Assembly: GCA_976226885.1 (NCBI GenBank)
Contig: OZ320319.1
Location: forward strand, 53,568,001-53,632,000
Length of the DNA: 64,000 bases
Direction of reading: 5' to 3'
DNA from: Iphione sp. A-MEVVRFRX5
Lineage: Eukaryota
The translations under genes and the position numbers were made by a program. Positions 8,047 through 54,750 of the stretch are shown here, piece after piece. The notes under the pieces were generated by a model. That model was not told the DNA's origin and searched no databases. It worked only from the letters and a program-made list of their open reading frames with translations. How positions within the stretch are numbered: position 1 is the stretch's first letter; every line of letters begins with the position of its first letter.

Positions 8047-8283
8047 ATACAGCTGGTCACTGACCTGTATGCCCAAGCAATCAAGCGTCATAGCCCCTTC
8101 CCACCCATCCCCGGCCCTCCGGCAGTCAGTGGCTGCTTGGTGCACATGGGGGCATGCGCTGTCATTACCAGAACAGTGAGTCACCACACATGCCCAGGAG
8201 TCTTCCTGGGACAGCCTCCGCAGAGTCTTCAGCACTCTGCTCTGGACTTCCAAAGTGTGCCTGCTCCCTTGGCCTGACTGACC

Positions 8284-9421
8284 ATGGACCACCAACAGCA
8301 ACAGCAACAGCAGCCACAACAGCCACAGCAAGCGGCCCCACAAGGCCTGCAACTGGAGCCTGTGCCTGCACAGTGTCCTCTGGTGTCCCCACCTGCCTAG
8401 CTGGCAGGCCCGGCCCCAGAGGCGCCCAAACAGCCTCTGGCTGTCTGCGATGTTCAGGCACTTGCCCTAGCTGCTCTGGCACAACCAATGACCGGCAGAG
8501 TCCCACAAGAGCTCCTTGACAGCGTGGTCGCCAATATGCAGAGGTCCACCATCATGACATAGAGGATGCACAGAGTGGAGTCTCTTCTCCAGATGATGGC
8601 CTTCATGAATGACTTCACCTGCTAGCCACCTGGACAACTCCATAGGCAACAGGCCCAGCCAGCCGCAGCCCTGCTGGTACAAGTGGCACAACCCCCAGTG
8701 GCCCTGCCACTGCCTGCCACACAGCCACCAGTTACAGTCCTAGATCTTCTTGGTCCCAGCGCTATGCCAAAGTACTCCAGACAGAGGGACCCAGACATAC
8801 AGGAGTACTCCAGCGACTCCGACAACAATGAACCTGAGTGATGGGAGTCCCGCCTCCACCAATGGCATGCTATCCCAGAGGAGGAGCTCCACTTCGAAAG
8901 AAGCAAAGACAAGAGAGTATATTACCCTGCAACCAGGCAGATGGCCAGGCACAGGAAGCCCTACATGTGCCTACCCAGTTCCAGCTGTTAACAGAGCCTA
9001 CAGAGCAGGCCGTGCCCCCCAACCACTGGTCGACCACATCAAGGACATCTGTGCAGATGCTGCCTAACACTCCTGGCCCTCAGTTCGACAGTGGTCCCTC
9101 AAAATCATTGAAAACATTAGCATTAGAAGGCACTCCTGGGACGACAGCGCTGAGATTCAGAGCAGGAGAAACATTGCTGTTACCATGGGCCTCCTGGCCC
9201 GAGCTGACAAGGAGGCTCTATGCTTCAGATACAACTCCCCCTCTTGCCTTGACTATGATGGCCACGTCTACGGGGGCACAGCCATGCTCCCCAGGTGTGC
9301 CTCCTGTTGGTATACCTCAGACAAATGCTACTGCAACCACCCTGGCACAGCCTGCCAGAGGAAGATATACCTCAACAAGATGGAGCAGAAGCAGCAGAAG
9401 CCCCCTGCCAAACCCCGCTAG
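8284..9421 (+). pseudogene. gag-like ORF1 of the outer element (stops and frameshifts)
   Basis: Starts MDHQQQQQQQPQQ. Includes LVDHIKDICADAA*HSWPSVRQW...SWDD (homologous to LEHIRDAAEEAHATGWDPIKDW...KWDD of the inner ORF1) and a C-terminal Cys/His finger LCFRYNSPSC...CASC...HPGTAC. Confidence 0.7.
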
Positions 9422-9989
9422 GACAAGAATCTGAGGAAGGACACCCCCAAAACGCACAGAGGAGGCCTAGGGCCAGCACCTGCAGCCATTAGCCCACATA
9501 ACAGATGCTGGCCCCCCTCCAGCTTCCCCTTACCGCACCGAATATTGCCTGATGCCCACATCACCCAGCCAAACACTCCACACACTCAGGCCCTCCGCAA
9601 ACACCCAATGGTCAGGAAACCCCGATCCCCTCTTATCCCACCATTGCCCAGACGTGCAGCCCCTAAAACAACACTAGTGGGCCCACTCAGCACCTGCCCC
9701 TTGAGTCCTGACACCATATGGCCTAAGGACATCTGACTGCACAGAGCTCACAATGACTGCACCTGCATGCTCGCTCCAATAACAGCCAGCATCACGCTGA
9801 CAGCCATGCACCGCCTGCCACCAGATGCCCATGGTACAAAGCAGCCCTGGCTACTCACAGAGCCCTCACATGGCCGGCTCTCCCCCCCTCAGGAATGGGA
9901 CCCACTGACCCAAACATACACTGCGGTTGCCCACCTTGGCCACCCAAACAGCATCGGAGCTGAGATTCTGCTCCACGTCCTCCCCACCG

Positions 9990-10286
9990 ACCAGTGGCAG
10001 CTGCTGCTACAGGCCACCATGATGACCAGTTCATCCTGGATGGGGTCACCTTTGGCTTTCCACTTCAGTACGCTGTGCCCAATCCCCCCCCCCAACCAGC
10101 CCCAGCCTGCTTGTCGTAACCACTCCTCAGCCAAGGCCTTCCCAGAAGCCCTGGAGGACTACGCAGCAACAGAGTTGGCCCATGGGGCCATCATGGGCCC
10201 ATTCAAGGGCCTCTCCCTTCACTTCATGGTATCACTCCTCCTTTGTGATGACGAGGCCCAAGTCAAATGGAGCCAGGTGCATCATA
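9990..10286 (+). pseudogene. RT N-terminus of the outer element, left of the nested insertion
   Basis: PACRNHSSAKAFPEALEDYAATELAHGAIMGPF...SNGARCII, a typical PAT/Ngaro RT start. Confidence 0.75.
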
Positions 10287-10452
10287 TAGCCACTACTCGG
10301 CGCTGTAGTTGCTGATTATTGCCAGAGAGTGGTGCCCCCTAGTGCTTTGGTATGTAGGCTGGTGCTGTGCAGCAGCGTGAGTGGCAGTTGGTGTTTGAAT
10401 TAGTTGGAGTGCAGACGTGCAACCCTGACTGTTGGGACTCTTCAAACAAAAC

Positions 10453-11388
10453 ATGCCAGATACTAAGGGCAATGATATCCCAGAAGGCGATATATCTACC
10501 GACATGATCATGAAGAAGCTCCTCGACAAGATCCAAGACCTGGAGCAGAGATTTGATGAATTCTCTCTTTCTCAAGCACAGAAGTCGAAAGGCAAGTCCA
10601 AGCAACCAAATCCAACGGTCATTACAAGATCAGCAGCAGCGAAGGGCTCGACACTCAGGATGACACCCCAACCCTCCGGGTCACTGTCTGACGACCAAGA
10701 TGTCCAAACAGCGGACGTCTAAGTCATGACCAGCACGCCTACAACACAATCTGACCAGATCCTGGCGCCACCAGTCATAAAGGCATAGGAAGCAGGCCGC
10801 ATCCAAGAGATCTTCAAGACCATCTATCTCAAGGCACTAGAGAATGTCGGTAAGCAGTTATGCAAGCCTAACCCGGAAAAATACATTATTTTCAAAGACA
10901 CTAATATTACCGACCTCAGGAAGGCTTCATTCCCTCATTACATCGCTGGTATCATGTCATTAATGCTCGACCTGTCAATTGAAGACCCCGCACAGTACAC
11001 CCACTTGCTCGAGCATATTAGGGATGCAGCCGAAGAGGCCCACGCGACAGGTTGGGACCCCATCAAGGACTGGGTCCACGAGCTGTGGACCAGCACAACC
11101 AATGACCAGTTGAAGTGGGACGACCACCAACGAATCCAGACCTTGAAGCAAAGGTCAATCTCCGCCTACAACAAAGAAACAGCCAGCAAATTCACGATGC
11201 CCACAAAAGAGAACATTGTCCCCTGCCCAAGGTGGAACTACTCTAAATGCCCCGACCATTCACCACATGTTTCCAATGAACTTTTCTTTTATCAAATATG
11301 CCCATTTTGTTTTATTGTGTCTAAAAAACAGATGGACCACAAGATAGATCAGTGTCTACCCAGGAGATGTGGACAAGCCCCGACGTAG
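10453..11388 (+). pseudogene. gag-like ORF1 of the inner element, two premature stops (10720, 10786)
   Basis: Track ORFs 10432..10722 and 10954..11388 share a frame. C-terminal CPRWNYSKC...CPFC...HKIDQC finger. Confidence 0.8.
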
Positions 11389-13464
11389 CCGCCACCCAAG
11401 CAGATGCAGCAGCAGGCGGACTACCGTCACGACTAACAGGACCCAGATTGGTAGACCCCCACAGCCAGTCAGCTGACCACTCACCTGATTCACATGTTTT
11501 CACCCCTGATTTCACCGATATGTCATTGTATGCGGCTCCTAATCATCTGCTTAAATCGCATGTTGACTCTACTGACTCCCTCATATGTTCAATGAACCCC
11601 AACTATGATACAAATGACAACTGTTTTCTTGAGTGTACAAACGAGCAATCCTGTGAAAAACATCAAAGCGTGTCTTGTTCAAACTGTGAAGTCAACCCCA
11701 ATGTATGCCCCATCGAAACGCCCTCCCGCAGCCTCGTTGCAACCCACCTTAATCTCCTGACCTCACGTCTCTTCAATTGGCCTGTGCCCTCCCCGTCGTT
11801 CCCCGTGCACCTGGCGAAAATATACACAACCGTTCGCTCGACAGGTCTCCCTAACCACATGGAGGCTAAAATTCCATTACCCACCCAACTAAATATCCCC
11901 AAATGGGAGGAATTCCTTGATTCACAGGCCCCAGCAGAATTTGTCCTCCTACAATTTATTAAATTTGGCTTCCCTATAGGATTCACTGGCATATGCATCC
12001 CACCTCAGAAACAATTGCCCTACACCCCTAGCCAGGACGATTCCCCCCACCTGAACAAATACGTATGCACTGAGCTGGGCCACATGGCCATTGTTGGCCC
12101 CTTCCACACAGACCCTTTCGTACCTCACTCTGTTATCAGTCCCATAATGACCAGATCCAAGAAGAATTCACCAGATAAGCGAATAATAGTTGATCTATGC
12201 CATAGCCAGGTTAACGCAGGCATACCATCCCACAACTACTTCTCAGTCAATGCTAGAGTCCAATTAACATCCACCTTAGACCTATATAATCTTATAATGT
12301 CTCACCCCAACCCTCCCTACATAGCATCACTGGATTTGAAGCACGCCTATAGGCACTTCCCGGTGGACCCCTTAGACTGGCCACTCCTCACCTTTCAGGT
12401 CCATGATACTCTCTACACTGACATTTCTCTCCCATTTGGCACTCATTTCTCTTCATTATTGCTATAATCTAAATCAGAAACAATACGGCAAAAGGTAAAG
12501 ACCCACTTCCCCGACATATACGCATTTGCCTATCTAGATGACTACATTTTCATCCACCCTGACCCCCAACATCTATCATCAGCCTTTGACCACGCTAAGA
12601 TCACCATTTCAAACCTGAGTCTAGTCCTAGCCCATGATAAATGCATCCCCCTTACCCAGGACATTATCTGGTTAGGGATTAGGTTCCAAACAGCATGTCG
12701 CCTCATGTCTATTCCCCTGTTGAAGGTTAAAGAAACGCAGTCAGCTGTCCAGTCAGCCCTGACTAAATCCACCCTAACCATACGAGAGATACAGTCTCTG
12801 ATTGGCCTTATCAACTTCATAGGGAAGTGTGTACACCCGCCTGCCTGTTTATTAACTCCCTCCTTGACCAGACTAGAAAGGCCCTCACCCACGCCCATAA
12901 ATCCGTCCGCCTATCCAATCAGTCACGACGAGACCTATCCTGGTTCCACAGATACCTCCCATCCTTCAATAGTATATCCATCATTCCCCCACCCACGCCA
13001 GTGCATACAATATATTGTGATGCCTCCCTCTCTGGTATGGGTGCTTACTCGTCCAGCATGTACTACTCCGGGCCTCTCCCGAGGCAGCTACGTTCCTCCT
13101 CTATTTCACAGCCTTTAACACGGCTGTAGCTATCTACTGCCTTCTCACCCCAGAGCACTCCAATAAGTAGGTAGAGGTAATTTGTGATAATTCAGCAGCT
13201 ATCCAAGTGCTTTCCACAGGTAAAACATGGGATTCCTACTTGGCCACTATAGCCAGGGCGGTATGGATGAGGGCAACTCGTAACCAGACTGAGTTACTAT
13301 TCACACATAAGCCCGGACATCTCATGGTTTATGCGGATGCCCTCTCTAGACTAAGTACATCAGCCAAATACATCACCATATATAAGCAATTCTTAAACCA
13401 CAATCCTGGTATCAATAGAATATATCCGGCTCACAACGTGGTGTCCACCATTTTCTCCTTCTGA
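11352..13464 (+). pseudogene. RT-RNase H ORF2 of the inner element (stop at 12465, frameshifts near 12840 and 13100)
   Basis: SPIMTRSKK...RIIVDL, SLDLKHAYRHFPVDPLDWPLL, LPFG, YLDD at 12531-12542, RNase H motifs YCDAS, CDNSAA and ADALSR. Confidence 0.9.
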
Positions 13465-13470
13465 TTACAG

Positions 13471-14438
13471 GGACTTCATTAGCCCCGCTAGCGGTGAGGG
13501 CCATTCGTAGGCAGACTCAGGCTGTCACACAAGAAACGCACCTGAGGCGCATCAGACAGGCAGAACTTGCAGTCGGTTTCTTCAGTCACTACCAATTGCC
13601 CCTGGAACAACTGCATGACCACCATATCCTGCTCTTCATAGAATACCTCTCCCTAAAGACCTTTACCCCCGAAGTGATTGGTCAATATATATCATCCCTT
13701 CGCTACCTACTCCAGGCTAAGGACCTTCCGTTGGAGGGCGTCAACTCATTCAGGGTTTCAACAGCATTACGAGCAGTCAAGCTCACAACACATGTCCCTT
13801 CCCAGAAGGCCCCAATTACCCCAGCAATTTTGGCATCGATTATTGATTATTTGAAACCTCTTGGCCCACTAGGCACTACACTGCAGTCAATTTTCATCTT
13901 CATGTTCTTTAGTATGGTAAGGCAGAGTAACATCGCCTCACGCTCCTCAGCCAAATTTGACCCCACCAAACAACTCACTCGCTCTGACGTAACCATCACT
14001 CCCGACTTGGTACTTGTCAATATTAAATGGTCCAAAACAATATCCAATTCTCAGCCAGAGGTCATAACCCTACCCTCCATCCATTCCCCTCTCTGCCCCC
14101 ACACTGCCCTGATACATATGCTCCAAGTGTCTCCAACATGTGCCCCAAATCAGGCTTTATTTGTAGACCCGGTATACAAGCAACCATTCCCTGTCAACAG
14201 GCTCACTCTAGTGTTAAAAAAGGCCCTGGGTAACCTAGGTCTCAACCCAGGAGAGTTCTCCCTCCATAGTTTCAGAAGGGGCAGAGCCCAGTCCCTCCAA
14301 GCAGCGGGCACCACAGACTCGCAGATATTGGCACAGGGTACATGGAAGTCCATGCCAGGCTCAGCCGCCTATACAAGTAGGGGCCTAGCATCACTCCAAG
14401 CCGCGAGGGTAATGTCCACCTGGCAGGGCTTGGCGTAA
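13471..14438 (+). CDS. Tyrosine recombinase ORF3 of the inner element (open, no N-terminal ATG)
   Basis: Catalytic set R (SMVRQSN), K (WSKT), HSFR, W (GTW), Y (AAY). The frame is open from 13419, and the first Met lies only a few codons before the catalytic Arg. A strong acceptor ttttctccttctgattacAG ends at 13470. Confidence 0.85.
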
Positions 14439-14668
14439 TCCCCGTTTGGGGTTTGGAGTAAAGTTCAAAAATATCGGTCTCCAGAGATCATATGTATGCA
14501 TTAAAAAATTGAATATGTACTGCTGTGACCTCCTGTTATTCTCAGTCTCGAGAGACTAACATGTCAACTTTAAATAAATGCCTTTGTTGTTCTCCAAATG
14601 TTGGTTTATCTTCTTGTGTTCTCTTATTTAGTCTCATCTGTGTTGGTAGTTAACGAACGGGGGCAATA

Positions 14669-15345
14669 ATAGTTGACCTCTCCTTCCCAATCAATGGTGG
14701 GGTCAACCAGCACATACAGAAGGACTTTTTCATGGGCCTACCGGCCACTCATGCCCTCCCCACCATACACGACCTCCTTGCCGATGCCCCAAAGTTCATT
14801 ATGGGCCCATTCAAGGGCCCCCCTCACCTTCACTCCATGGTAACACTCCTCCCCTGTGATGACAGAGCCCAAGTCAAGTGGGGCCAGGTGTATAATAGCT
14901 GACCTCTCCTTCCTAATTGACAGCGGGTCAACCAGCATATACATGAATCTTCAATGGGCATCCCGGCCTCTCATGCCCTCCGCACCGTCCATGACCTCAC
15001 AGACCTCCTCATCAATACCCCAGAGTCCCCCCTCCTCGCCATCATTGATCTCAGATGGGCCTACTGCCACTTTCCCATCTGCCCCATGGACCTGCTCCTC
15101 CTTGCACTTTGGCTCCCATCTGACATCCATGTAGACCTCTCCCTCACATGGCATCATCCTCATGGCGACCTCGCTCCACCAGGCCTAATTGGCAGTCCGG
15201 GACACACTGGCCCTGCCAGCATCCCTGGGCCTCCAGGTCACCAAAGAAAAGCTCCAGCAGCCGGTGACTCAGGCAACCTGGCTAGGAACCGAGATAGACA
15301 CTGCCCAAGGCACCCTCTCCCTGCTAGAGGAGAAACTGTGCTCTC
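14669..15345 (+). pseudogene. RT of the outer element, right of the nested insertion, with a diverged internal duplication, ending in a deletion
   Basis: IVDLSFPINGGVNQHI...HDLL, then again IMGPFKG...ARCIIADLSF...AIIDLRWAY.HFPICPMD...LGLQVTKEKLQQPVTQATWLGTEIDT...EEKL. Confidence 0.75.
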
Positions 15346-15821
15346 ACCTTTAACCATGTCAATTTCATTAACTGTCTCATGTTTGCTCATGTGTATTGAA
15401 TAAAGTTGTCTCCACTCAACTACTTGTCTGTAATGGGAGCGCATGGGGACACATGCTGTCATTACCAGAGCAGTGAGTCACCACACATGCCCAGGAGTCT
15501 TCCTGGGACATCGAGTCCTCACCACTCTGCTCTGAACTTCCTAAGTTGCACCCTCTTGCCTCATCAGCCTACCCCAAGGCAGGATGATGGGCCATCAACA
15601 ACGATAGAAAAAACCATTGGACACTGGGGCACAGCTCCACCTATGACAATGGTTGACTCACTCATGACCATGCTGGACTCTCTTATGCTGCTGGACACTC
15701 ACTTGGACTTATCACAACTAGAGACTATCTGACCTTTAACCATGTCAACTGCATTAACTGTCTCATGTTTGCTCATGTCTATTACATAAAGTTGTCTCCA
15801 CACAACTGCATGTCTGTAATG
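15346..15821 (+). repeat. B1-A2-(spacer)-B2 repeat arrangement at the right end of the outer element
   Basis: B1 15346-15435 vs B2 15732-15821 differ at about 8 of 87 nt by eye. A2 15436-15560 matches 8140-8270. Confidence 0.8.
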
Positions 15822-19931: not shown

Positions 19932-21177
19932 GTAAGTTACACGTAAATATACCAGAACTTTAGATTTTTGAGTGTTTTTCAAGCATATATCTTGTTAAGT
20001 ATATAATAACATTGTAATCGAAATCCAATTTAAGACCATATGATGAGTACTTACACCATGATATGATAATCTTCACTCGCGTATCGAGGTCGGGTCGGGA
20101 AAATGGGACCATGACAAGGCAGAATGTATGAGTGTTGAGGGGAACATAAAGCTAAATACATTGGTCTGTAAAACCTATTTAAGTGGTGAAAGCTGCATTT
20201 TGTGTGTGTATTTGTTAATCCTAACTTCAACTGGCGATATTTGATATACAGAACCATAACGTATTTAAGAGATCCTATTATCGCTCAGAGCACCGTCAAG
20301 AAGCCACCCTTTTTACATAGATGGAGCCACAGTTAGTGTCTGTAAATGTAGCGAGGAGGCTTAAGTGGCCGTCACTAAGTTTAATTTCCTATGAGGAATT
20401 CAAAATATTATATCTAACAACTGGTGGACCAGTAGATTGATTATCTCACCATATCACACTTGTTGTCCCCCGCCTCATAGAGGTAGGGGGGACTTAAGGA
20501 ATGCTGCTGGCTGACTGTTCAACCTTCCGTCACACTCTTTTGGGTCTTATAACTCCCAAACCCTCCTGTCAAATCAACTGATTTTGATTTATAATTTACT
20601 TATGTACATGGACCCATGACACTGGCTAATTGTCCCCCGCCTCATAGAGGGGGGGACATTAGGAATGCTACCAGCTGTTGTCCCGACCATCCGTCACACT
20701 CTTGTGGGTCTTATAAGTCTTAAACCATTGACTCAAAAGACCTGATTTTTAAGATATGATATTTGTGTACATTGCCCCATGACACTGTGTAATTTTGGTC
20801 ATAATTCAAGTATTTTAAAGGTGAAATTATGCCAATTATACTCATTTGCTAACACACCTATAAACATACATACCTGGTTTAGGGGTTCCTAGGTCTGACA
20901 ATGCACATACATGCACACATACACACTCAACAATATCTCCCTTCTACCAGCAGTCTGGTGCTCATTGAGGCAGAACCGAGAGAGCTGTGCTCAGTCATGC
21001 AGAACCGAGGGTTTGTAGCAGTCTGGTGCTCAGTGAGGCAGAACCGAGAGTTGTAAACCTGAAGGACTTAAGCCCAGCCAACCACCCCAAAACAAGGTAC
21101 CAATCAAGGTGGTTGTAAAGAGAGAGACACCACACACACACATACACATACTCATTCTCTCTGTTCCCTCTCTCTGT

Positions 21178-33944: not shown

Positions 33945-34551
33945 CGCCTTGCCGCTCTGAACTACTGGCAAGCCTCCTTGTTATTATCTCGTGATGCCAA
34001 CGCGTTGGAATGTATGGTGGGATCCAGCTATCAGTGGCATTTACCTGCCACACAATCACCAAATTCCGGACTACTGTTAGCTATACCTCCTGCAGTCTCT
34101 GCTTTATCAGTGAATGCAGATATACATTATAAGGTGTTTCAGTCAGAGAGGTGAATATTCAAGTAGCATTAAGTACAAAGCAATGCACGGGTATGCTTAC
34201 TATGCCAACCTACGCATGTGTACTAGTATCTTTTGCAATTTTAATTCTGTATATGCCCACTAGAGGGCTTCCATGAGAACCCCTAGCGTCGGATACGACT
34301 GGCACACCTCAGTTGTCTACTAGCACTCGGACGGCTCGGACACACCTCGCCTGGGCACTGACTGTTGCTGGCTGCTTATTGGTGCAGATAAGTATTCTTT
34401 TTTATATCAATTCCAGCTTTCCTGTGCCCATCTATATTACTGTTTTGTACAGTTTTGTGCCGTTGTTCGGTATTTTTCGTTCTTTTATTGCCATTACACC
34501 TGCCACAAGGCTCCCCAAAGGTGTTCCATACGGTGTTACCGGTGGTTGGTT

Positions 34552-35997
34552 ATGGCTTCTCCCCATTTTTCGTTAGACAATTTTTTAGATGAAGAGGTTC
34601 AGTCTTCTGCCAAGAAAAGGCCTAAGAGAACTCCGAAGGGTTCAAAGAAGACGCCTCAAGGCAAAACTCCTCGAAAAAGACGGTCTCAGGTGGATTCAGG
34701 ACCACCGGCGAAAGTTCCAAATTTGTCGGACCATGTGACCGACCACTCCGACCAACAGGCCTCCCCTCCCTCCTCCCCCCCGCCTGTACTAACCCCTCAG
34801 GCCATCCAATCTGTTGACCAGTCCGATACAGGGGGTGGGTCGTCTCAAGTGGTTGGGGCCAATTCAGATGTCCTACTTCAAGCTATCGTAGGTCTTCAGG
34901 CCAGCATGAAGGTTTTGGATGAAAATTTGGGGAAAAATTTAACCCAGGGTATCAATGCTATTGTTGATACGGTTGCTGCTTTGGGTGAATCTGCTCCCCC
35001 TTTGCCTTCTTCGTCCTCTGGGGGTAAGTCTTCTTCTGGCGGTAAGGGTTCGGTCTCTACTGCTTCACGTGCTAAGACTCATGATGTTTCCCCTTCCAGT
35101 TCTCAGTGTGATTCAGATGAAGAGCAAGATAGGCCCCGTGACCATGAGGGTGTAGATTCTGATTTGGAGGGTCCTTCTGGGGACTTTATTGATTCAGCCT
35201 CGTCTGTTTTGGTTACTGATCCGTCCCTTGGGCCCCCCGCTACTGAAAAAATTGTCTCCTTCTTAGACAAGTGTATACATACCCCTTTGGGTATGGAAGC
35301 TGCTATTGCTCTGAGGAAAGATTATCCTGTGCCTTCTAACAGTGAATGGATGAAATCAGTTCGGGTCAATGAGCCGGTTTGGATTTCCTTGTCTAAGGAA
35401 GCCAAAATTAAAGACCGTTCCACCCAGAAGGTCCAGAATTACACAGTGTCTGCTATGTCTGTGCTTACTCGAGCGGTTGAGATTGTTCACAAACATACTT
35501 CCCCTCCCCAACCGTGGGTATCTATGCTTGCCAAGATGTTTACTGACTTGTCTTTTTTCTTGGGTTTGATTGATACTCAGCTAACCAAGATCCGCAGGGA
35601 GGACATCCGTCCTCACCTTCTCCCTGAGCATCGCCGATTGGCTTCTGTGGATTGCCCCGCTTCTGCAACCCTCTTATTTGGAGATTCTCTTGAGTCTTCA
35701 TTAAAAACCTCTGAAAATATGTCTAGGTTAGTTAATAGGGTAGACCGTTCAAGAAGGCAGGGGTTTCAGAGGGGTCAAAGCTACCCTTATCGCGGTTCCC
35801 CTCGTTACAGAGGTCGAGGGGGCAGGTTCAACAAAAATCCTTTTCGCAGGAGGTTTGCGTACCAGAATGCTTACAGCCAGCCCATGTATCAGTCTCAACA
35901 ACAACAACAATCTCCTCAGGGCAATGTCCCGGCCTTGATGAACCAGCCTGTTGCAGCCCCTCAGAAGCAGATTCAGGGGCCGCAGGTAAGGAAATAA
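34552..35997 (+). CDS. DIRS1 ORF1 (gag-like), 481 aa
   Basis: Open frame from ATG 34552 with DIRS gag-like segments (KDYPVPSN...VNEPVW...KVQ...LFGDSL...RGRGGR). Confidence 0.88.
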   Translation: MASPHFSLDNFLDEEVQSSAKKRPKRTPKGSKKTPQGKTPRKRRSQVDSGPPAKVPNLSDHVTDHSDQQASPPSSPPPVLTPQAIQSVDQSDTGGGSSQVVGANSDVLLQAIVGLQASMKVLDENLGKNLTQGINAIVDTVAALGESAPPLPSSSSGGKSSSGGKGSVSTASRAKTHDVSPSSSQCDSDEEQDRPRDHEGVDSDLEGPSGDFIDSASSVLVTDPSLGPPATEKIVSFLDKCIHTPLGMEAAIALRKDYPVPSNSEWMKSVRVNEPVWISLSKEAKIKDRSTQKVQNYTVSAMSVLTRAVEIVHKHTSPPQPWVSMLAKMFTDLSFFLGLIDTQLTKIRREDIRPHLLPEHRRLASVDCPASATLLFGDSLESSLKTSENMSRLVNRVDRSRRQGFQRGQSYPYRGSPRYRGRGGRFNKNPFRRRFAYQNAYSQPMYQSQQQQQSPQGNVPALMNQPVAAPQKQIQGPQVRK

Positions 35998-36002
35998 ATT
36001 TT

Positions 36003-37856
36003 GTGGCAGGTTCTTTATCTTCTTGCAGGTCTCAGTGGAGGCTTTTGTCTCCGGATTCTGAGGTTTTGCAAGCTGTTTCAGGTTATCATTTAGATTTCGC
36101 TTTAAAGCCTTTTCAGTCATTTAAGCCTAGGCCGATTTCCTTTAGTGAAGAAGAAAATGGTTTTATAGCTGATGAATTATCTAATCTTTTGCAGTCTGGA
36201 GCCATCTCTTTGGTGGATGACCCTCCTCCGGGATCTTTCTTCTCTAACATTTTTCTCCGTCCTAAGCCTAACGGATCTTTTCGAATGATTTTGGACTTGT
36301 CTAAACTTAATTTGTTTATTTACTATAGGCATTTCAAGATGGAGACTCTGGAGACAGTCCTACCCCTTCTTACCCCAAATTGTTTTTTAGCCTCTATTGA
36401 TTTAAAAAATGCTTACCATTCTATCCCCATTTTCTCTCCTCACAGGAAGTTTTTGTCTTTTACCTGGAATGACTCTACCTATGTCTACAACGCTTTGCCT
36501 TTTGGCCTTTCGTCGGCTCCCAGGCTCTTCACCAAAGTGATGGCTCCACCCCTGTCTTTTCTACGAGATAAGGGTTTGATTATTGTATCATACATAGATG
36601 ATATTTTGATTATGGCTGATACCTTTGATTTGTGTGTTGAACATGTCAATATGACTATTGCTCTTTTATTAAAGCTAGGCTTTTTCATTAACTACCAGAA
36701 GTCGGTCCTGCAACCAGCAAACCAAATTGTGTTTTTGGGGTATTTAGTAGACTCTGTGTCTATGTCTGTCAGGCCTACTGAGCTGCGTGTTACTAAGATT
36801 TTTGATGCTGTTTCTAATTTGTTGATTTCTCCTGATTTAGTCATAAGGAAAGTGGCCCATGTTATAGGTCTTCTGGTAGATGTTTCCAGAGCCTCTAAAT
36901 ATGGCCGTAACCATCTCAGGCCTCTGGAGGTGGACAAGACCTTAGCCCTGTCGGCCTCTAGGGGTTCATATGATGGTCATATGCGCCTTTCGCTGCCTTC
37001 CCTTGTGGAGTTACGGTGGTGGCTTGAGAATTTGCCTTTGGTTTCGAAGTCCATTCTCCCACTTGTGTCACATCTTCTCTGCACTACTGATGCTTCAGAG
37101 TTTGGTTGGGGTGCTGTTTTCCAAGGTACCTCCATAGGTGGGAGATGGCTACCCCATGAGTCGACCTTCCACATCAACATCCTGGAACTTAAGGCTATTT
37201 ATTTAGCTGTTAAGAGTTTTTTCAGTCAGCATAGGGATGTCACAATTTTTGTTTTTTCAGATAATACGACTGCCATTTCCTACCTTAACCACATGGGGGG
37301 TACAAAGTCTCCCCCTTGCCGGGCGATTGCGAAGAAAATTTGGACCTTCTTAGAACAGCGTAATCTGTTTGCTCATGCTTTTTATATTCCAGGTGTCTAT
37401 AACACTTGTGCAGATTATGCTTCAAGGCGTTTTAAGGACAATATTGAGTGGAAGCTTGGTCCTGTTGTTTTTCAGGAAATTGTTCAAGCTTGGGGTTTGC
37501 CGGATGTTGATCTTTTTGCGTCGAGGATCAATAATCAACTGCCTTTGTATGTTAGTTGGCGTCCGGATCCTGCTGCTCAGTGGGTGGATGCTTTTTCTCT
37601 TGACTGGTCACAGTTCTCATTCCCATACTTATGTCCCCCTTTCTCTATTATTTCTAGATGCCTACTCAAGCTTCAGTTCGACGCTCCATCTCAAGCAGTC
37701 TTGGTTGTTCCAGCTTGGCCAAACAGGCCTTGGTACAGCAGGGCCCTCAACGCAGCTCGTCAAACACTCTTCTTCAGGAAAAGTCCGTTCAACTTACTCA
37801 ATCACAGGGGCGCTCCAGCTATGGCGCCTATCGCCATTATGGCCCTTCTCTTTTGA
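36003..37856 (+). CDS. DIRS1 ORF2: reverse transcriptase - RNase H - Dam-like methyltransferase domain
   Basis: RMILDLS, SIDLKNAYHSIPI, LPFGLSSAPRLFTK, YIDD 36591-36602, TDAS...HINILELKAI...DNTTA, and VDLFAS...DAFSLDW...YLCPPF. No ATG until 36285. Confidence 0.95.
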   Translation: MAGSLSSCRSQWRLLSPDSEVLQAVSGYHLDFALKPFQSFKPRPISFSEEENGFIADELSNLLQSGAISLVDDPPPGSFFSNIFLRPKPNGSFRMILDLSKLNLFIYYRHFKMETLETVLPLLTPNCFLASIDLKNAYHSIPIFSPHRKFLSFTWNDSTYVYNALPFGLSSAPRLFTKVMAPPLSFLRDKGLIIVSYIDDILIMADTFDLCVEHVNMTIALLLKLGFFINYQKSVLQPANQIVFLGYLVDSVSMSVRPTELRVTKIFDAVSNLLISPDLVIRKVAHVIGLLVDVSRASKYGRNHLRPLEVDKTLALSASRGSYDGHMRLSLPSLVELRWWLENLPLVSKSILPLVSHLLCTTDASEFGWGAVFQGTSIGGRWLPHESTFHINILELKAIYLAVKSFFSQHRDVTIFVFSDNTTAISYLNHMGGTKSPPCRAIAKKIWTFLEQRNLFAHAFYIPGVYNTCADYASRRFKDNIEWKLGPVVFQEIVQAWGLPDVDLFASRINNQLPLYVSWRPDPAAQWVDAFSLDWSQFSFPYLCPPFSIISRCLLKLQFDAPSQAVLVVPAWPNRPWYSRALNAARQTLFFRKSPFNLLNHRGAPAMAPIAIMALLF

Positions 37857-37870
37857 AAGCAGCAGTCCAA

Positions 37871-38782
37871 ATGAAATGTCTTTCCAAGTCTGTTAGGGAT
37901 ATCATTCTTCAATCGTGGCGGTCTAGGACGCGTCTCCTTTATGACTCCTATCTTAAGAGATGGAATACTATGTGCTTCATTAAGGGGTGGGATCCCTTGT
38001 TTCCTCAATTAAGGCAGCCTCTTCAGTTCTTGGTAGATCTTTTCAATAAAGGTCTACGTTATAGTGCCTTGAATACAGCGCGCAGTGCTCTGTCGGCAGT
38101 TCTTCCCCAGTATGATGGTGTAGCCTTTGGCAAGCATCCTGATACAGTGAGGGTTCTCACTGGGTTTTTCAACCTTAGACCTCCTGTGGCCCGTATTGAT
38201 TATGTTTGGGATGTCCAGAAAGTATTGAATTATCTCCGTTCTTGGTCCCCTAATTCTTCTATTTCTCTTAAACAATTATCGTTGAAGTGTTTAATGCTGT
38301 TGTTACTTGCCTCTTGTGGTAGATTGCAAACTATTCATCAAGTTATGCTGCCTAACATTCATTCTCTAGGTGATGGGTCCCTCCAAATTAATTTCACCTC
38401 GACCCTTAAACATTCCAGGAAGGGCAGGCCTGCGTCAAAGATTTTGTTGCATAAGTTTACTAAACATCCATCTATTTGTGTGTTGAAGTGCCTTAAAGCT
38501 TATATTTCTGCTACGTCTTCTTTGCGGGGTTCTGCTGAGCAATTGTTCATTAGTCATAAGTCTCCATATAAGCCTGTTACTACAGCCACTATGGCTAGAT
38601 GGGTTAAGGAAGTTTTACTGTCAGCTGGTATTGATATATCAAAGTTTACTGCGCACTCTACCCGTTCCGCCTCTGTTTCCAAGCTGTCTAAGATGGGAGT
38701 TCCCATCAATGATATTATGAAGAGGGGGATGTGGTCTAATGCCAGCACTTTCCAAACGTTTTATTTGAAGGAGATCCATTAA
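37871..38782 (+). CDS. DIRS1 ORF3 tyrosine recombinase (303 aa from ATG 37871; the frame is open upstream, overlapping ORF2)
   Basis: Catalytic R (SCGRLQ), K (TLKH), HSTR, W (GMW) and Y (TFY) all present. Confidence 0.93.
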   Translation: MKCLSKSVRDIILQSWRSRTRLLYDSYLKRWNTMCFIKGWDPLFPQLRQPLQFLVDLFNKGLRYSALNTARSALSAVLPQYDGVAFGKHPDTVRVLTGFFNLRPPVARIDYVWDVQKVLNYLRSWSPNSSISLKQLSLKCLMLLLLASCGRLQTIHQVMLPNIHSLGDGSLQINFTSTLKHSRKGRPASKILLHKFTKHPSICVLKCLKAYISATSSLRGSAEQLFISHKSPYKPVTTATMARWVKEVLLSAGIDISKFTAHSTRSASVSKLSKMGVPINDIMKRGMWSNASTFQTFYLKEIH

Positions 38783-38835
38783 GGTTTGTTTCTCTTTTTA
38801 GGTTTCCTTTCTACACATGTTCGCTAGCTTTAAAG

Positions 38836-38959
38836 TCTCATGGAAGCCCTCTAGTGGGCATATACAGAATTAAAATTTGTAGGAAATACGAACTTACCTT
38901 GAGTAAGTGATGTATAAACGTAATTTTCCTATCTGTATATGCCCACAAGGGGGCATCGA
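38836..38959. repeat. DIRS internal complementary region (ICR)
   Basis: 38836-38877 is the reverse complement of the left terminus from 34237, and 38871-38959 is the reverse complement of the right terminus ending at 39156. The two halves overlap at TAAAATT. Confidence 0.93.
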
Positions 38960-39636
38960 TGCCCTCCCATGTATACCCACCCTGATACATGCTCTCCTGT
39001 GTTTTCAGGAAACCTTTGCTTTCAACAACTGAGGTGTGCCAGTCGTATCCGACGCTAGGGGTTCTCATCGATGCCCCCTTGTGGGCATATACAGATAGGA
39101 AAATTACGTTTATACATCACTTACTCAAGGTAAGTTCGTATTTCCTACAAATTTTATACATTAATTGCTTGGTAATTTTTTTCTTTTTTAAATGTTCTCA
39201 TGACTACATAATCAACTCAGGGCTTTTTGATTGGCAAAAAGAACCAGCGATAGAATTAGTAAGAAGATTATTAACATGTGCTACATTCCTCTGACTCGGC
39301 CAGAGTTGTGCTAAAATTCTACCTTTTCGACCCATCCTACAGAGGCATCGGGGTACCGCCAAACTTAAAAAAAAAATCAAAGAATTTTGTAACCTTACTA
39401 TTTTCGGTGGGCTGAATTTTTGCTTCTCTATTCTTTGGAATCACCACTTCTCGGTGATCTGCCTACTGATTTGAATCACTTACCATCCCACCCCCACAGC
39501 TTGGCCACCTGCTTCACGCATGAAGTGCGTGGCGCATGCCCGTTCCTTGGTAATAGATAATGACGTAAATGCACGTGCGTGCCCATCCTTCGGAGAATAT
39601 TGGGCATCTGTACCCTCTGAATCTGATGAAACTCCA

Positions 39637-42060: not shown

Positions 42061-43560
42061 CTAATGGACATGGCCAGCGTAGTGCAGCTGACTTTTCTTG
42101 AGGAGAATGAAAATACTGAAAAGACCTGTTTTAGTTGTCATTTCTGTGTCTGGGATCTTGTCTTGACATTTGACATTGAGGAGCTTTCTAAGGCAAGAGA
42201 GGACAAAATAGTTCAGTTTCTTGGCATGGCACTGGTATTCTGTCCAAGTGTCAGCACCAAAGAGTAGGGTAGTAAGGATGACTGCTAGGTATATTTGGAC
42301 TTTTGTGTTCAAGTAGATAAATGTTTCCTATACATAACTATTATACCAACACATCTGCAATAAGGACTGCTACTTTTAAAGAGTGTCTTCCTATGGACAG
42401 CGTTGTCGCATGAATTTGGGGCTGCAGGGAGGCCTCAGAAATCATTTTCAAAGGTAGAATGAATAAATCCATGTAGATGAGCTGTTGTCACATGAATTTC
42501 AAGCTGTAGGGAGGCCTCAGAAGTCATTTTCAAAGGTAAACATGAATAAACCCATACGGATAAGCTGTTGTCACATGAATTTAGTGGTGCAGAGAGGCCT
42601 CAGAGGTCATTTTCACACGTTTCCTTTAATATCCCACTAAAAAAATGTGTGACTTTTAGGACTTACTTTTTAAATTTAGCACTTTTATAGACTCTTACTC
42701 ATTAAATTCAGCACTTTTTGGACTCTCACTCTTCAAATTCTGTATTTGTTGGACTTTTACTCATCAATTCAGCACTTTTTGGATTCTAACCTGTTATAAG
42801 TCTACTTCTGTGTCATTCACATCCATTCACAAATACACATGTTATATGCTACTCATGATCTACAAACCAGCGGATAATTTGAGGCAGAACGGAGGGTGTC
42901 CAGAATCAGGATGTTCCACTGTATGTAGTTGCCCCAAAACACAGCTTGCTTTAGAGATGTGAGCATCTGTCTCTCTGTCAATGTTAATTTGATGGGATAG
43001 TGTGCTGCCAAGGTAGGTGGATTTGTCGACACATTTTAATGGCTCATGTCCCACAGCGACTCAAGGTTTGATATATACCTGGCCAGGAGCAGTTTGAAAA
43101 AGGACTTCAGTCTTCTTCGTACTGATGGTAAGGTCAAAGTTAAGCTGCACAACAGAGAAAAGATCTATACCTTGTTGTATATATCTTTCATTTCTTGCAT
43201 TCGGGACATAGTCATTGGCAAACATGAAGTCTCTGAGGATGATAGGGTTGGTTTTTGTCTTGGTTCTTAAGTAAGATTGAAGAGCTTTCCAGTAGTTCTG
43301 AATCTCACCTCAAACCATGGATCTTCTGGTTTGAATGCATCAGGAAGCATTACAGTGAACATGATGCTGAATGGGATTGGTACAAGGACACATCCCTGGT
43401 CAACACCATTCATGGCAGCCAATGGCTCAGAAAATTCTCCATTGTCAAGCATCTGGGTTTGCATGCCGTCATGGAATTCTCTTATCACTGACACAAATTT
43501 CTGAACGTCAACCATCAGAAGATATTGAGAAACATTGGCCACTAAGGGTACATCTGCAAT
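42061..43560 (-). mobile_element. RTE-clade (BovB-like) LINE RT relic in two pieces (43560-42900 and 42320-42061)
   Basis: IREFHDGM...GVDQGCVL...FSIMF, LRDFMFANDY (FADD site), STKKTEV, YLGSTLS, TKVQIYLAVILTTLLFGADTW...LRKLL...QDKIPDTE...QLHYAGHV. Confidence 0.9.
42397..42800. repeat. Two tandem arrays inside the segment splitting the RTE relic: about 82 bp x 2.6 and about 30 bp x 5
   Basis: gttgtcacatgaattt recurs at 42402, 42484 and 42567. cagcactttt..gactcttactc recurs over 42655-42800. Confidence 0.8.
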
Positions 43561-44513: not shown

Positions 44514-44867
44514 TAGGGCCCCCCAAATAATAGATGCATTTCTGGTTATGACCAGCCAATAACCTAGGTAGGGAGAGGGGGGGGGGTATCTTTGTTATCT
44601 TTTTTGTACTTTCTTCCTCTGGTTTTGAATAATAATAAAGACAATATGAATAATTTTGACTAATTTACGTGAGTTTTTACAGTGCTTTTTGCTGAATTTC
44701 CATGGATTTTATTGTTTTTCTACAGAAATTACCAAAAACATGTGCTATGAAAACAAGTATTTAAGGAATTTCAGCCCTGGAAACTCTTGGGGCTAAAACA
44801 TTTTGAAGTAGGGTGAGGTTTTACTAGGTAGGCGTGGGTAAACAGAAACACACCTATTTTTTGCCTA
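44514..44867. mobile_element. MITE, copy 1 (about 355 bp)
   Basis: Imperfect TIR aggc..aaatagrtgyrtttctg / cagaaacacacctattttttgcct. Homologous over its length to 54394-54750. Confidence 0.75.
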
Positions 44868-47800
44868 GCTAATGTGTATCCACTTAGTAACAAAATAAGT
44901 AACTGGATAGAAACATGGAATTTCAGGCTTTAAATAACTATAATTATTATTTATTCGGGGAGTTTGACGATACAGTAGCCATGTTCAACTACATGTATCT
45001 TCACCAACTGTGGTCATACTATCAGTGAAAGTTGCAAACCCTGCACAGAAATAAAACTGCAATGTTAACGGACTTGTTCGGTTATTGTGTTACATCATTG
45101 TCAACACCATACCCTTTTAAAACCCAAACGCCATCATCCTGAATGGTTCGGTTTCACAATTGAATATATGTCAAGAAAATCATTTATGAAGGGCTATACA
45201 GCAAAACTCTTGCCAACTTCTACCTATACAAAGCCGTAGCTACGGAGTCAGCAAAAGCAGACTGGGAAAATCCACCACTCAAGACAGGTGGCAAATGTAC
45301 ACTATGCATAGCTCGTTAAGTTGAAGACGTTGCATTTGCTGATTCTTGCTGAGTTAAGATATGTCATATCGTTTTAGCTTATCAACGAGACAGAGAGACA
45401 GGGATAGGCAATCGGGGGAAAGACAGATGGAGGAAAGAGGGAGACAAGGACATGTAAGGGATAGTCTAGGGAAACACGTTGAGGTCCAACATGTATGAGG
45501 GTGTTTTTATAAAAAGAATGTCTACCACAATATTAATGAGAACTGAGCACTGTCAACCCTTTGTCCATGTGAAGATGACAAATTGAACGAAGGAATTCCA
45601 CCTTGAAAGTATTGATCGCGATAGTGTTTTTTTTCCGATACAAAATTACATACGTCTGTTCTTTTGGAAGGTAAGACAAAATTGGCTTGAGATTTCACAA
45701 AAACAACAGGCTTCACAGTGTAAGTCAAAATGGAAATGAGGCTGTTCAGCAAATGGCAGAAAATAAGACCAAACAGTGAATATTCATAAGCTGATTTTTA
45801 ATTCTTGGGAGTGTGCCTCGGTGGTACACGGTAACCACCTTCCTGCTAATTGCCAACACCAGCTCCAACCACGAAGCACAACTGCCATGCACCAACACAA
45901 AAGATGAGGAAATTTTCATTCTACATTTCACGATTCTATACTGTATACGGTATTATTTTGGTGGAGAAAGCGACAACAAAGCTCTCACAATGGCTGGGTG
46001 GTTTCAATATTCTGCAGCCTCGCTTAAGAAACAGCCTCGCTTAAGAAACATCTACATGTACTTCCTTCTTATCGTCTCTGTGTGCGCTAGATATACTCAT
46101 TTTGTTTACATTGTTTTACCCTATCAGTAGCCACCATTGTTGAGAAAACCATTCATTGTGTCCGCTCAGTTTAACAATAGTGGACCATAATAGAAACATA
46201 TAGATCTATACTTTTACCTGTATATGGAATGTATATACATTTGTTCGTGTGTTCGTGTGTGTATGCGTGAGTTGACTGCGTAATATTTTAGGCAGTGGAC
46301 GAAGACGTGCCTGTACACTCCTGCATGGGATATATGAGCTTTTAAATGATAATGGGAAATAAGTCTTTCCAAAGTTCATTGTTCTAGAACATGTGCATAA
46401 TTAGACAGGAAAAGGAAAAGAAAACTTACGTCTGTGTACATGCAGCTTGCAATGGTTCAGGTGGGTATTTAACTATCCCAAGAAAGAGTTCAAGTAGGGC
46501 ATGTAGCCAGAATAATAAACAGGTTCGTGAAAATTGCTAAAAGACTGCTCCTACAAGGAAATACATGTGATAGAAGTGAAATCGTTTTTGAAGAAACTAC
46601 CTCCTGCGCTTGAGATGTTAATCCTCATTAGAAGACCGACCATCCCAATATGTATGTATATGTAGGTAGGTTTAGATGCACTTGATGTCTGTGAGAAAAT
46701 GCCAAATTGTGGAATTGAATATTACCACGGAAAGCACGTTTTGGATAGATTGAAGGATGCACCGCACGTTTAGTGAGCTAAAGACGTAGAACATTCAGAT
46801 AATATGTTCAATGATGAACCTGTCCTGGTAAAAATGAGAATTGAAACTGTATTCCAACATCTTTCACCATCAGTCCATGACCTTCAACGAGAAATTTTCT
46901 AGTTTCCTGATGTCCTAAACGTCACTGACTGCTATACGTTTATATGGTAGAATTTACAATTTAGAGGGCCATGTATCTTGATCCAAACGGTTCTACTGTC
47001 ATATGGGCGCAGGTGGAGGGGACCCGGGGAGGGATGACCGGCTGGACAAGCAAGACCACACAAGTTACCTATAGTGTCAAGAATTCTAAAAATGTTTTAA
47101 CGCCAGTTTGTAGCACAAAGCCAACACCACAATGTCAGGTTCAATATCAGCTGTTTATTCTTCTTCAGCAACTAGTACAGTGAGTCAGCAATTCAGCAGC
47201 AGTAGGAAGATGAGTCTGACGAGAGCATCGGACTGCTCTCATTATATACTCTACTTACCAATAGTGACAACACATCCTACTTGCGTCAACCAGATACAGT
47301 TATTCATTACATGTCAACTACACAATGGGTCATTATGACTTAGGTATCATGACGTCACTAGCGCCCGATGTCCAGGGTCTCATAAAAGATCACTGATAAC
47401 ATCTACATTGTTCACAAAGTGACTCAACACAAAATACAATGGCTTTACACTGTTTTAGGCTAGTTCCGCTTGACACTAATATGAAGAACACAAGTTCCTG
47501 CCAGACAAAATTTTTTTTATCACTTTACAGTACTTCGTAGTAAGGCTTTACTTCAGTATTTCTATCTGTACACTATACATAATATAACATCCCAGTACCG
47601 CTTGTGCTAGAGCATAATCTGAATATTATAACATAACATTATCTCACACTAACATAACATTACTTTTATTGCACGGTAGTTATGTATTGGTTTCAAACAT
47701 TATACAATATACCCTTTTTAGAACATTATGTCTAACGACACATCATCACCTTTATTCAACCTGTGTTACAAGTTAAAGCTGTTTGAACACAGAGTTACAA

Positions 47801-54393: not shown

Positions 54394-54750
54394 AAGGCTC
54401 CCCCCAAAATAGGTGTGTTTCTGGTAATGATCTGCCAAAAACCTAGGTAGAGGGGGGGGGGTATCTTTTTTTCTTTTTAGATTTTTTTCCACTTTCTTCC
54501 TCTGGTTTTCTATAATGATACAGACAATATGAAGCATTTTGACCAATTTGTATGAGTTTTACAGTTTTTTAGTGAATTTCCATGGACTTTGTTGTTTTTC
54601 TACTGAATTTACAAAAAACATGTGCCATGAAAACACATATCTGAGGAAATTCACCCTTGGAAACTCTTTGGGGCCAAAGACTTTTTAGGTAGGGTGAGGT
54701 TTTAATAGGTAGGGGTGGGTGACCAGAAACACATCTATTTTTTTGGCCTA
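54394..54750. mobile_element. MITE, copy 2
   Basis: Same TIRs and internal sequence as 44514-44867, same orientation. Confidence 0.75.

Follow-up and report, generated by a model that had tools for sequence, protein, structure and literature searches.

A Ngaro-like retrotransposon without split direct repeats, nested in a repeat-bearing element, carries part of a putative junction hairpin found in its relatives

Sequence analysis of a 64,000-nucleotide (nt) stretch from Iphione sp. A-MEVVRFRX5 (assembly GCA_976226885.1, contig OZ320319.1, positions 53,568,001 to 53,632,000; this whole stretch is called the window) revealed a tyrosine recombinase (YR) retrotransposon at positions 10287-14668, nested in a second, related element. 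The copy has no visible terminal repeats, and a 19-nt stretch close to its left end is complementary to both of its termini. An initial annotation of the locus had described this stretch as a miniature internal complementary region (mini-ICR) acting as a 5' splint, and had proposed that it represents a third end architecture among YR retrotransposons. The comparison with relatives points to a different interpretation, in which the stretch would be one half of a hairpin spanning the junction of the right and left ends, present beside the split direct repeats (SDRs) of the same clade.

The nested element contains, successively, a gag-like gene, a polymerase gene (pol) with reverse transcriptase (RT) plus RNase H, and a YR gene; the coordinates of all features are collected in Table 1. 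Besides its in-frame stop, the pol contains two frameshifts, near 12824-12878 and 13084-13111, and is thereby distributed over three reading frames. In blastx comparisons it aligns with the RT/RNase H pols of the relatives (657-813 aa) until their last ~25 residues, and the YR open reading frame (ORF) begins about 100 nt behind it. No methyltransferase domain was detected in the element by Pfam (no Dam match), while a DIRS-like element of the same window does give one; as the pol ends collinearly with those of the relatives and is directly followed by the YR, the methyltransferase is considered absent. The recombinase itself has no Pfam match at E 0.01. It shows 33-36% identity over ~280 aa to the YRs of SDR-bearing elements, where these lie downstream of RVT_1 pols, and in the alignment the residues R142, H257, R260 and W283 are invariant, the Y291 column belonging to the 90%-or-more class. 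With respect to coding content nothing is missing from the copy, yet it is dead. Its initial description as full-length is correct with regard to gag, pol and YR, which are collinear with those of the relatives, and incorrect if an intact copy is meant, given the three stops and two frameshifts.

Judged by its gene content, the element is Ngaro-like: a YR follows the pol, gag and RT/RNase H lie upstream in the usual order, a methyltransferase is missing, and the nearest relatives of both YR and RT bear SDRs. Of the features expected for this group only the SDRs were not found. The features of the DIRS1-like group are missing: the element has no inverted terminal repeats (ITRs), no long internal complementary region (ICR) at the right end and no methyltransferase, a domain that would be expected of a PAT-like pol as well.

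The ends of the nested element can be defined exactly through the interrupted host sequence, as initially suggested. The host flanks joined across the insert are open in frame, and the host aligns without gaps both to a neighbouring duplicate (14797-14998) and to the RT of the DIRS-like element (at 36003) only when 4385 nt are removed. Because this removal implies one shared ATA, an ATA is placed on either side of the insert, and the circle junction reads ggcaata-ATA-tagcc as predicted. The 3-bp ATA is common to the circle junction and the target, and there is no true target-site duplication. The same behaviour is described for YR retrotransposons, DIRS1-like elements among them: their 3-bp junction is exchanged with a target of the same sequence, so that either end of the insert keeps one copy (PMC3266345; PMC7192593). 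The insertion lies in the motif ..ARCII/VDLSFP.. (..IIVDLS..) of the putative host RT. The target, taken in the form of its paralog (ATAATAG), is similar to the right end of the element, CAATAATA. A likeness between target and B end (B being the right-hand repeat of SDR elements) is visible in the window (ATCATA vs AATAATA) and at the related loci L009 (TAATA vs TAATG) and L003 (AATG vs AATG). The RT motif of the nested element (IIVDL, 12182-12196; AATAATAGTTGATCT) is identical in 14/15 positions to the right insertion junction AATAATAGTTGACCT (14665-14679). The insertion struck the corresponding motif of a related RT, where the sequence is similar to the element's own right end.

The host is itself an element of the SDR type. 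The label "host RT" relies on a short RPKxNG..R.I.DLS motif and on the SDRs of the host; Pfam assigned no family to the host flanks, and when the host was compared by blastx with the window's DIRS-like proteins, no match was obtained at E 0.01. The host is internally short, with ~3.3 kb when the insert is subtracted, and contains a local duplication of ~226 bp (10189-10286 plus 14666-14776 vs 14797-14998).

The absence of terminal repeats, noted initially, was confirmed by several means. Repeat finding detected neither SDRs nor ITRs in 10287-14668, blastn of the element against the whole window returned the self match only, and gapped Smith-Waterman comparison of the 5' and 3' untranslated regions (UTRs) with the rest of the element and the ±3 kb flanks remained at shuffle level. 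The result is meaningful because the same tools recover the SDRs of the relatives and the ITRs and ICR of the DIRS-like element at 34237-39156. The only terminus-complementary stretch of the nested copy is the one of 19 nt at its left end. Other repeats of the window, unrelated to the hairpin, include a 350-nt dispersed direct repeat (44519-44871 vs 54400-54754, 81% identity) and tandem arrays, e.g. 20463-20794 and 42402-42615. Copies of the same family were found neither in the window (blastn) nor in any sequence collection searched: a recombinase search of 1.84 billion representatives gave a best YR identity of 33-41%, a YR word search a single match (34%), an RT word search a best identity of 40%, and single-protein scans of metagenome and genome contigs no same-family copy.

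The stretch 10305-10323 reads GTAGTTGCTGATTATTGCC. Compared with the reverse complement of the circle junction ggcaata-ATA-tagccactac, it gives 17 matches, 2 mismatches and 1 gap, exactly as first reported; the mismatches are the G.T pair T10287/G10314 and C10291/T10310. It can also pair with both termini, the left half with 10287-10296 and the right half with 14662-14670, so that the layout, with a slash at the border of right and left end, is GGCAATAAT A / TAGCCACTAC-TCGGCGCT-GTAGTTGCTG ATTATTGCC. The outer duplex, of -10.3 kcal/mol, is the best among all families tested. Folded as single-stranded DNA, the 59-nt circle junction adopts the proposed structure exactly as its minimum-energy fold (-11.8 kcal/mol); in the 76-nt junction context the minimum-energy fold pairs 14659-14665 with 10332-10338 instead. 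The chance level of the complement depends on how it is counted. In the fixed 20-nt (7+3+10) frame, which was picked post hoc, 0/400 shuffles match, and this test was not relied upon, other frames giving p from 0.03 to 0.4. The junction-spanning local score was reached by 37/2000 shuffles when only the complement was considered and by 83/2000 in either orientation, and an exact 9-mer inside the first 80 nt occurred in 19/5000. By itself the window complement is moderately unlikely (p about 0.02-0.04), which is suggestive, not decisive. The Rfam scan of the window gave no match.

Table 1. Features of the nested element, its junction hairpin and its host (positions of the window)
Feature	Positions	Strand	Basis or remark
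Host element, SDR-type	8139..15821	+	A1 8139-8256, B1 15342-15435, A2 15436-15546, x, B2 15728-15821
Left ATA copy (target or crossover core)	10284..10286		host frame and length fit with one ATA left after excision
Nested Ngaro-like YR retrotransposon, unit-length (A-int-B), degenerate	10287..14668	+	collinear gag-like, RT/RNase H and YR; SDRs and ITRs absent
Inner 5' arm, extreme left terminus TAGCCACTAC	10287..10296	+	pairs with 10305-10314: 8 Watson-Crick, 1 G.T, 1 mismatch
Apical loop TCGGCGCT	10297..10304	+	fold
Inner 3' arm, left half of mini-ICR	10305..10314	+	pairing with 10287-10296
Outer 3' arm ATTATTGCC, right half of mini-ICR	10315..10323	+	complementary to 14662-14670 over all 9 nt
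Alternative partner TGCCCCC for GGGGGCA 14659-14665	10332..10338	+	minimum-energy fold of 76-nt junction context
gag-like ORF	10453..11385	+	in-frame stops 10720-10722 and 10786-10788; blastx to gag of relatives, 21-23% identity
pol (RT/RNase H)	11754..13395 (approx.)	+	in-frame stop 12465-12467; weak RVT_1 match; collinearity with relatives
Tyrosine recombinase ORF	13497..14438	+	R...HSFRRGRA...GTWKS...Y; R...HxxR...Y signature
3' UTR/trailer (230 nt), repeat B equivalent	14439..14668	+	poly(A)-like signals at 14500 and 14573
Outer 5' arm GGCAATAAT	14662..14670	+	final 7 nt of element and 2 nt of shared ATA
Right ATA copy	14669..14671		same host reconstruction

Every relative with definable ends has the canonical organization A1-int-B1A2-x-B2: L001, the seven copies L002-L008, L009, L010, L012 and L016. 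In these elements repeat A spans the leader and repeat B starts 10-100 nt after the YR stop. The leader (167 nt) and trailer (230 nt) of the window copy agree with A and B both in length and in location, and the copy therefore corresponds to exactly one A-int-B unit; it differs from the Ngaro-like relatives in having no A2-x-B2. The spacer x, unique sequence between A2 and B2, measures 41-143 nt in L001, L002, L009, L010 and L012 and 343 nt in L016; that of L001 (11228-11268) contains TATATAAA. The A1-B1A2B2 scheme in the papers covered does not mention this spacer. A solo A-x-B remnant of 335 nt lies at L006:1489-1820, 6.5 kb upstream of a full copy, and is 95% identical to A2-x-B2 of the L002 family. 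The remnant demonstrates that SDRs recombine in the relatives.

An independent set was assembled from 77 metagenome loci selected by recombinase profile, 13 of them with B1/B2 repeats after the YR. Among all the loci obtained, several could not be used: L013 (no repeats, contig beginning within pol), L014 (perfect tandem with a period of 5408, junction undefinable), L018 (831-nt tandem), L019 (tandem arrays, no SDRs), L020 (~610-nt arrays at both sides) and L047 (second B repeat stopping at the contig end). L037 was retained in the metagenome swap and fold tests though 6 nt remain after B2, and L087 is of the same family as L076. Two of the loci have further features of their own. The Ngaro-like unit of L014 (L014:1-10195) carries a GDSL/SGNH lipase ORF, and its tandem, 100% identical over 4743 nt, may be either a tandem array or the assembly of a circular molecule. 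L011, an invertebrate-like ENA contig, contains a 629-aa ORF (L011:2650-4539) with a complete RAG1 domain set (DNA-binding, pre-RNase H, RNase H, ZnC2, ZnH2 and C-terminal), located 3.5 kb upstream of an isolated YR that carries B1/B2 repeats.

At the B1/A2 junctions of the relatives, the final 7-11 nt of B are complementary to a site in A (positions about 28-51) located beyond an inner hairpin. This geometry has the following features: (i) an outer stem of 6-11 nt with at most two internal mismatches, falling at A positions 21-51, in 11/12 families, L076 having an outer stem with only a 4-nt run; (ii) an inner hairpin, present in every family (Stouffer z -5.8); (iii) a junction motif of one of two types, ..TAATG(A)/...(G)TCATTA.. 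or ..AATAATT/...AATTATT..; (iv) a crossover core, ATA in the window and TGA, ATG or TGG in the relatives, situated where the outer 5' arm has its inner end. The layouts of L012, ACTAATGA / ... AATAAAGC-CTAT-GCTTGATT ... TCATTAGT, and of L001, CCTAATG G / ... AATTGAGC-CCAT-GCTCAATT ... CATTAGG, illustrate that the core TAAT ... ATTA is conserved and that the flanking bases vary among families with the complementarity kept. The host element has the same arrangement, its junction reading ..CTGTAATG/GGAGC GCATG-GGGACA-CATGC TGTCATTACCAG and the hairpin CTGTAATG / ... GCATG-GGGACA-CATGC ... TCATTACCAG. While the junctions of the relatives contain internal loops of 6-8 nt, the window complement extends over 19-20 nt with one bulged base. 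In the relatives the hairpin is intact at the internal B1/A2 junction, and its halves are split between the ends of the integrated element.

The specificity of the pairing was examined by a swap test, in which the B end (12 nt) of each family was compared with the first 70 nt of A of each family, cognate combinations against all permutations. In the first set the cognate sum was reached by 1/5040 permutations; with junctions taken strictly from repeat finders the value was 1-2/720, and with the host element added 2/5040. Eight controls were run, for which B was reverse-complemented, its end was reversed, A was sampled further along, or the 12-mers were taken from deeper in B. Seven of them gave p 0.24-0.98 and the reversed-B-end control was borderline (p 0.09). 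No effect was seen in a further swap test, in which the B side was 40 nt long. Folding is consistent with the swap results. The minimum-energy folds yield the junction hairpin in L001, L009, L010 and L012, and RNAalifold, supplied with the sequences only, returned the outer stem in two groups of four families with 2 and 3 compensatory pairs. Junction windows of the first set had a mean z of -1.80 vs -0.42 in nearby windows (Wilcoxon p=0.031), and those of the metagenome set -0.73 vs -0.22 (Wilcoxon p=0.034). Among the metagenome loci the hairpin geometry is shown by L031, L035, L037 and L038, and weakly by L076; several families of this set share the AT-rich arms ..AATAATT / ... AATTATT.., which resemble the window motif.

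The junction hairpin is well supported in the closest relatives and only moderately further out, and the above results suggest a clade-wide feature that coexists with SDRs. Because hairpin and SDRs occur together, in L001, L002-L008, L009, L010, L012, L016 and in the host element alike, the complement is not an alternative to SDRs, and the proposal of a third end architecture is not upheld. The splint role proposed with it survives in part: the stretch is real, its geometry is conserved, it covaries in the relatives and a bridging of the ends by it is plausible, but not as a replacement of the SDRs. The most probable reading, to which a probability of roughly 0.6 is assigned, is that 10287-14668 is an old, inactivated unit-length Ngaro-like copy within an older SDR-type element, that its mini-ICR is half of a junction hairpin shared by the clade and present beside the SDRs, and that the loss of SDRs is secondary. 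The complement is probably a real, shared signal for end joining or recombination. That the SDR-less state is derived is favoured by about two to one, on the basis of the solo A-x-B remnant of L006 and of the precedent in Xenopus, where SDR loss is reported as the main decay route of Ngaro-like copies and where the SDRs missing from a Ngaro-like consensus "without SDRs" turned out to be present in individual copies (PMC9210276).

Several observations weigh against this reading. The metagenome swap test gave p=0.07 and is not significant, and the hypothesis was formed on the first set; low power is expected of the metagenome test, given the AT-rich arms that several families have in common. No clear hairpin is present at the metagenome loci L055, L089, L090, L091 and L094, and in L011, L045 and L061 a hairpin is present with the repeat-defined B/A border across the inner hairpin, beside the other outer arm. 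Related families (L001/L012, L002/L010, L035/L037/L038) are non-independent, and AT-rich motifs favour chance pairing. Taken alone, the host junction falls short of significance (duplex p=0.30, fold z +0.47) and the left-end hairpin of the window is ordinary (z -0.17; -0.9 in a second test). The types of outer-stem mismatches (G.T vs A.C) carry no strand information. Finally, no second copy of the window family was found, and every comparison is one between families.

Under the preferred reading, that of a clade-shared junction hairpin beside SDRs, the events at the locus may be envisaged as follows. The element would have entered an older SDR-type element related to it, recombining at an ATA core within that element's RT motif (..IIVDLS..). 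Its mini-ICR would be the 3' half of the junction-spanning hairpin, the outer stem being formed by the last ~9 nt of the element with nt 29-37 and the inner stem-loop by nt 1-28. We infer that folding takes place in a single-stranded replication intermediate, RNA or cDNA, in which the outer stem would place the 3' terminus beside the 5' terminus and the inner hairpin. At this place the B/A junction could be joined or copied from a template, in the way suggested for the ICR of DIRS-1, and the YR would exchange strands at the inner end of the outer stem with a target resembling the B end. In this process the hairpin would act together with the SDRs. The subsequent loss of A2-x-B2 might be due to recombination between B1 and B2, to excision of A2-x-B2 by the YR, or to a unit-length circle formed by excision and re-integrated.

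An alternative interpretation takes the arms as inverted recombinase-binding sites on duplex DNA, similar to lox, FRT or att sites and possibly acting after the inner palindrome is extruded as a cruciform, the covariation then reflecting co-evolution of half-sites and protein. The junction lies at the inner end of the outer arm, the place at which YRs cut with respect to the arms they bind, the border of L011, L045 and L061 lies in the mirror position beside the other arm, the target resembles the B end, and the lack of G.T among the outer-stem mismatches means that single-strand pairing is not specifically indicated. However, the arms are 20-45 bp apart, well beyond the 6-8 bp that separate the arms of known YR core sites, the segment between them forms a conserved hairpin for which half-sites on duplex DNA would by themselves have no need, and the intermediates of DIRS-1 are single-stranded (PMC7192593). 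Duplex sites are the main rival of the preferred reading, though an unlikely one.

It may also be supposed that the lineage of the window truly abandoned SDRs, the 19-nt 5' splint alone bridging the cDNA ends for circularisation and YR integration. There is no trace of A or B in the element or within ±3 kb, and no other family has a junction complement as long and as unbroken as that of the window (19-20 nt, one bulge, -10.3 kcal/mol for the outer duplex), as a take-over of the SDR function would need. The relatives L013 and L019 are likewise without SDRs, but both are degenerate or truncated, with undefinable ends. The supposition is based on one dead copy, while all end-definable relatives, and the host in the same genome, carry SDRs with the hairpin; an A-int-B unit is what SDR recombination is expected to leave, and apparently SDR-less Ngaro-like consensuses proved incomplete (PMC9210276). 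Such a lineage is therefore considered improbable. Least convincing is the view that the AT-rich ends of the window copy match by chance and that too much is read into the pattern of the relatives: the window-only test is modest (p 0.02-0.04), the replicate swap test gave p=0.07 and the pattern was initially spotted by eye, but the swap tests with their negative controls, the unaided recovery of the stem with compensatory pairs by RNAalifold, the consistent position of the site in A among families and the agreement of the host element with the prediction after the hypothesis had been set make it very improbable.

Among known systems, the nested copy shares with Ngaro-like elements, beyond gene content and UTR position, the insertion at a short core common with the target. 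The hairpin is absent from the published descriptions covered: the Ngaro-like literature to 2026, with the original Ngaro descriptions outside this coverage, describes SDRs and no junction hairpin, which is apparently new. With DIRS1-like elements the copy has in common an internal stretch complementary to both termini, and in DIRS-1 the ICR is experimentally essential (PMC7192593). The DIRS1-like ICR differs in measuring 88-130 nt, in its place immediately inward of the right ITR and in the long ITRs and methyltransferase that accompany it, whereas the window complement has 19 nt, is situated 18 nt from the left end and occurs with neither. A canonical, apparently intact DIRS1-like element is present in the window itself at 34237-39156. 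It starts with AAT, has ITRs at 34246-34316 and 39025-39095 and an ICR at 38836-38961 in which 42 nt complement the left end and 91 nt the right end, and encodes ORFs of 483, 617 (RVT_1 plus Dam-like methyltransferase) and 374 aa (Phage_integrase).

Two more distant systems can be compared. The genome of Ty1, which uses an integrase and long terminal repeats, contains the 5'-3' RNA cyclisation boxes CYC5 and CYC3. As in the window, short complementary boxes lie near both ends, here of the genomic RNA; they differ in serving the initiation of reverse transcription and not junction formation. Integron attC and the attP(+) of CTX phage are folded single-strand YR sites of bacterial DNA elements that involve no reverse transcription. 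Their form recalls the hairpin described here, being an imperfect palindrome with two helices split by unpaired bases and a variable loop, with the element border in or beside the outer helix and the site intact only as a circle. The likeness is one of geometry, an analogy only. A bolder interpretation, in which the junction hairpin is the true attachment site of this clade, recognized as a folded single strand in the manner of attC, and is so uninterrupted in the window lineage (19-20 nt, one bulge) that unit-length elements circularise and integrate there without SDRs, draws on this analogy and is quite improbable.

For the annotation of such elements, the window copy is a warning that the lack of SDRs in a single copy is no evidence of a new architecture. 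How YR retrotransposons beyond DIRS-1 rebuild and join their ends, and where their recombination site lies, is not established in the literature covered. A short, conserved hairpin across the circle junction, whose outer stem has the crossover core at its inner end, is a concrete candidate for the recombination or joining site. If this is true, the hairpin would link the ICR idea developed for DIRS1 to the elements of the SDR type.

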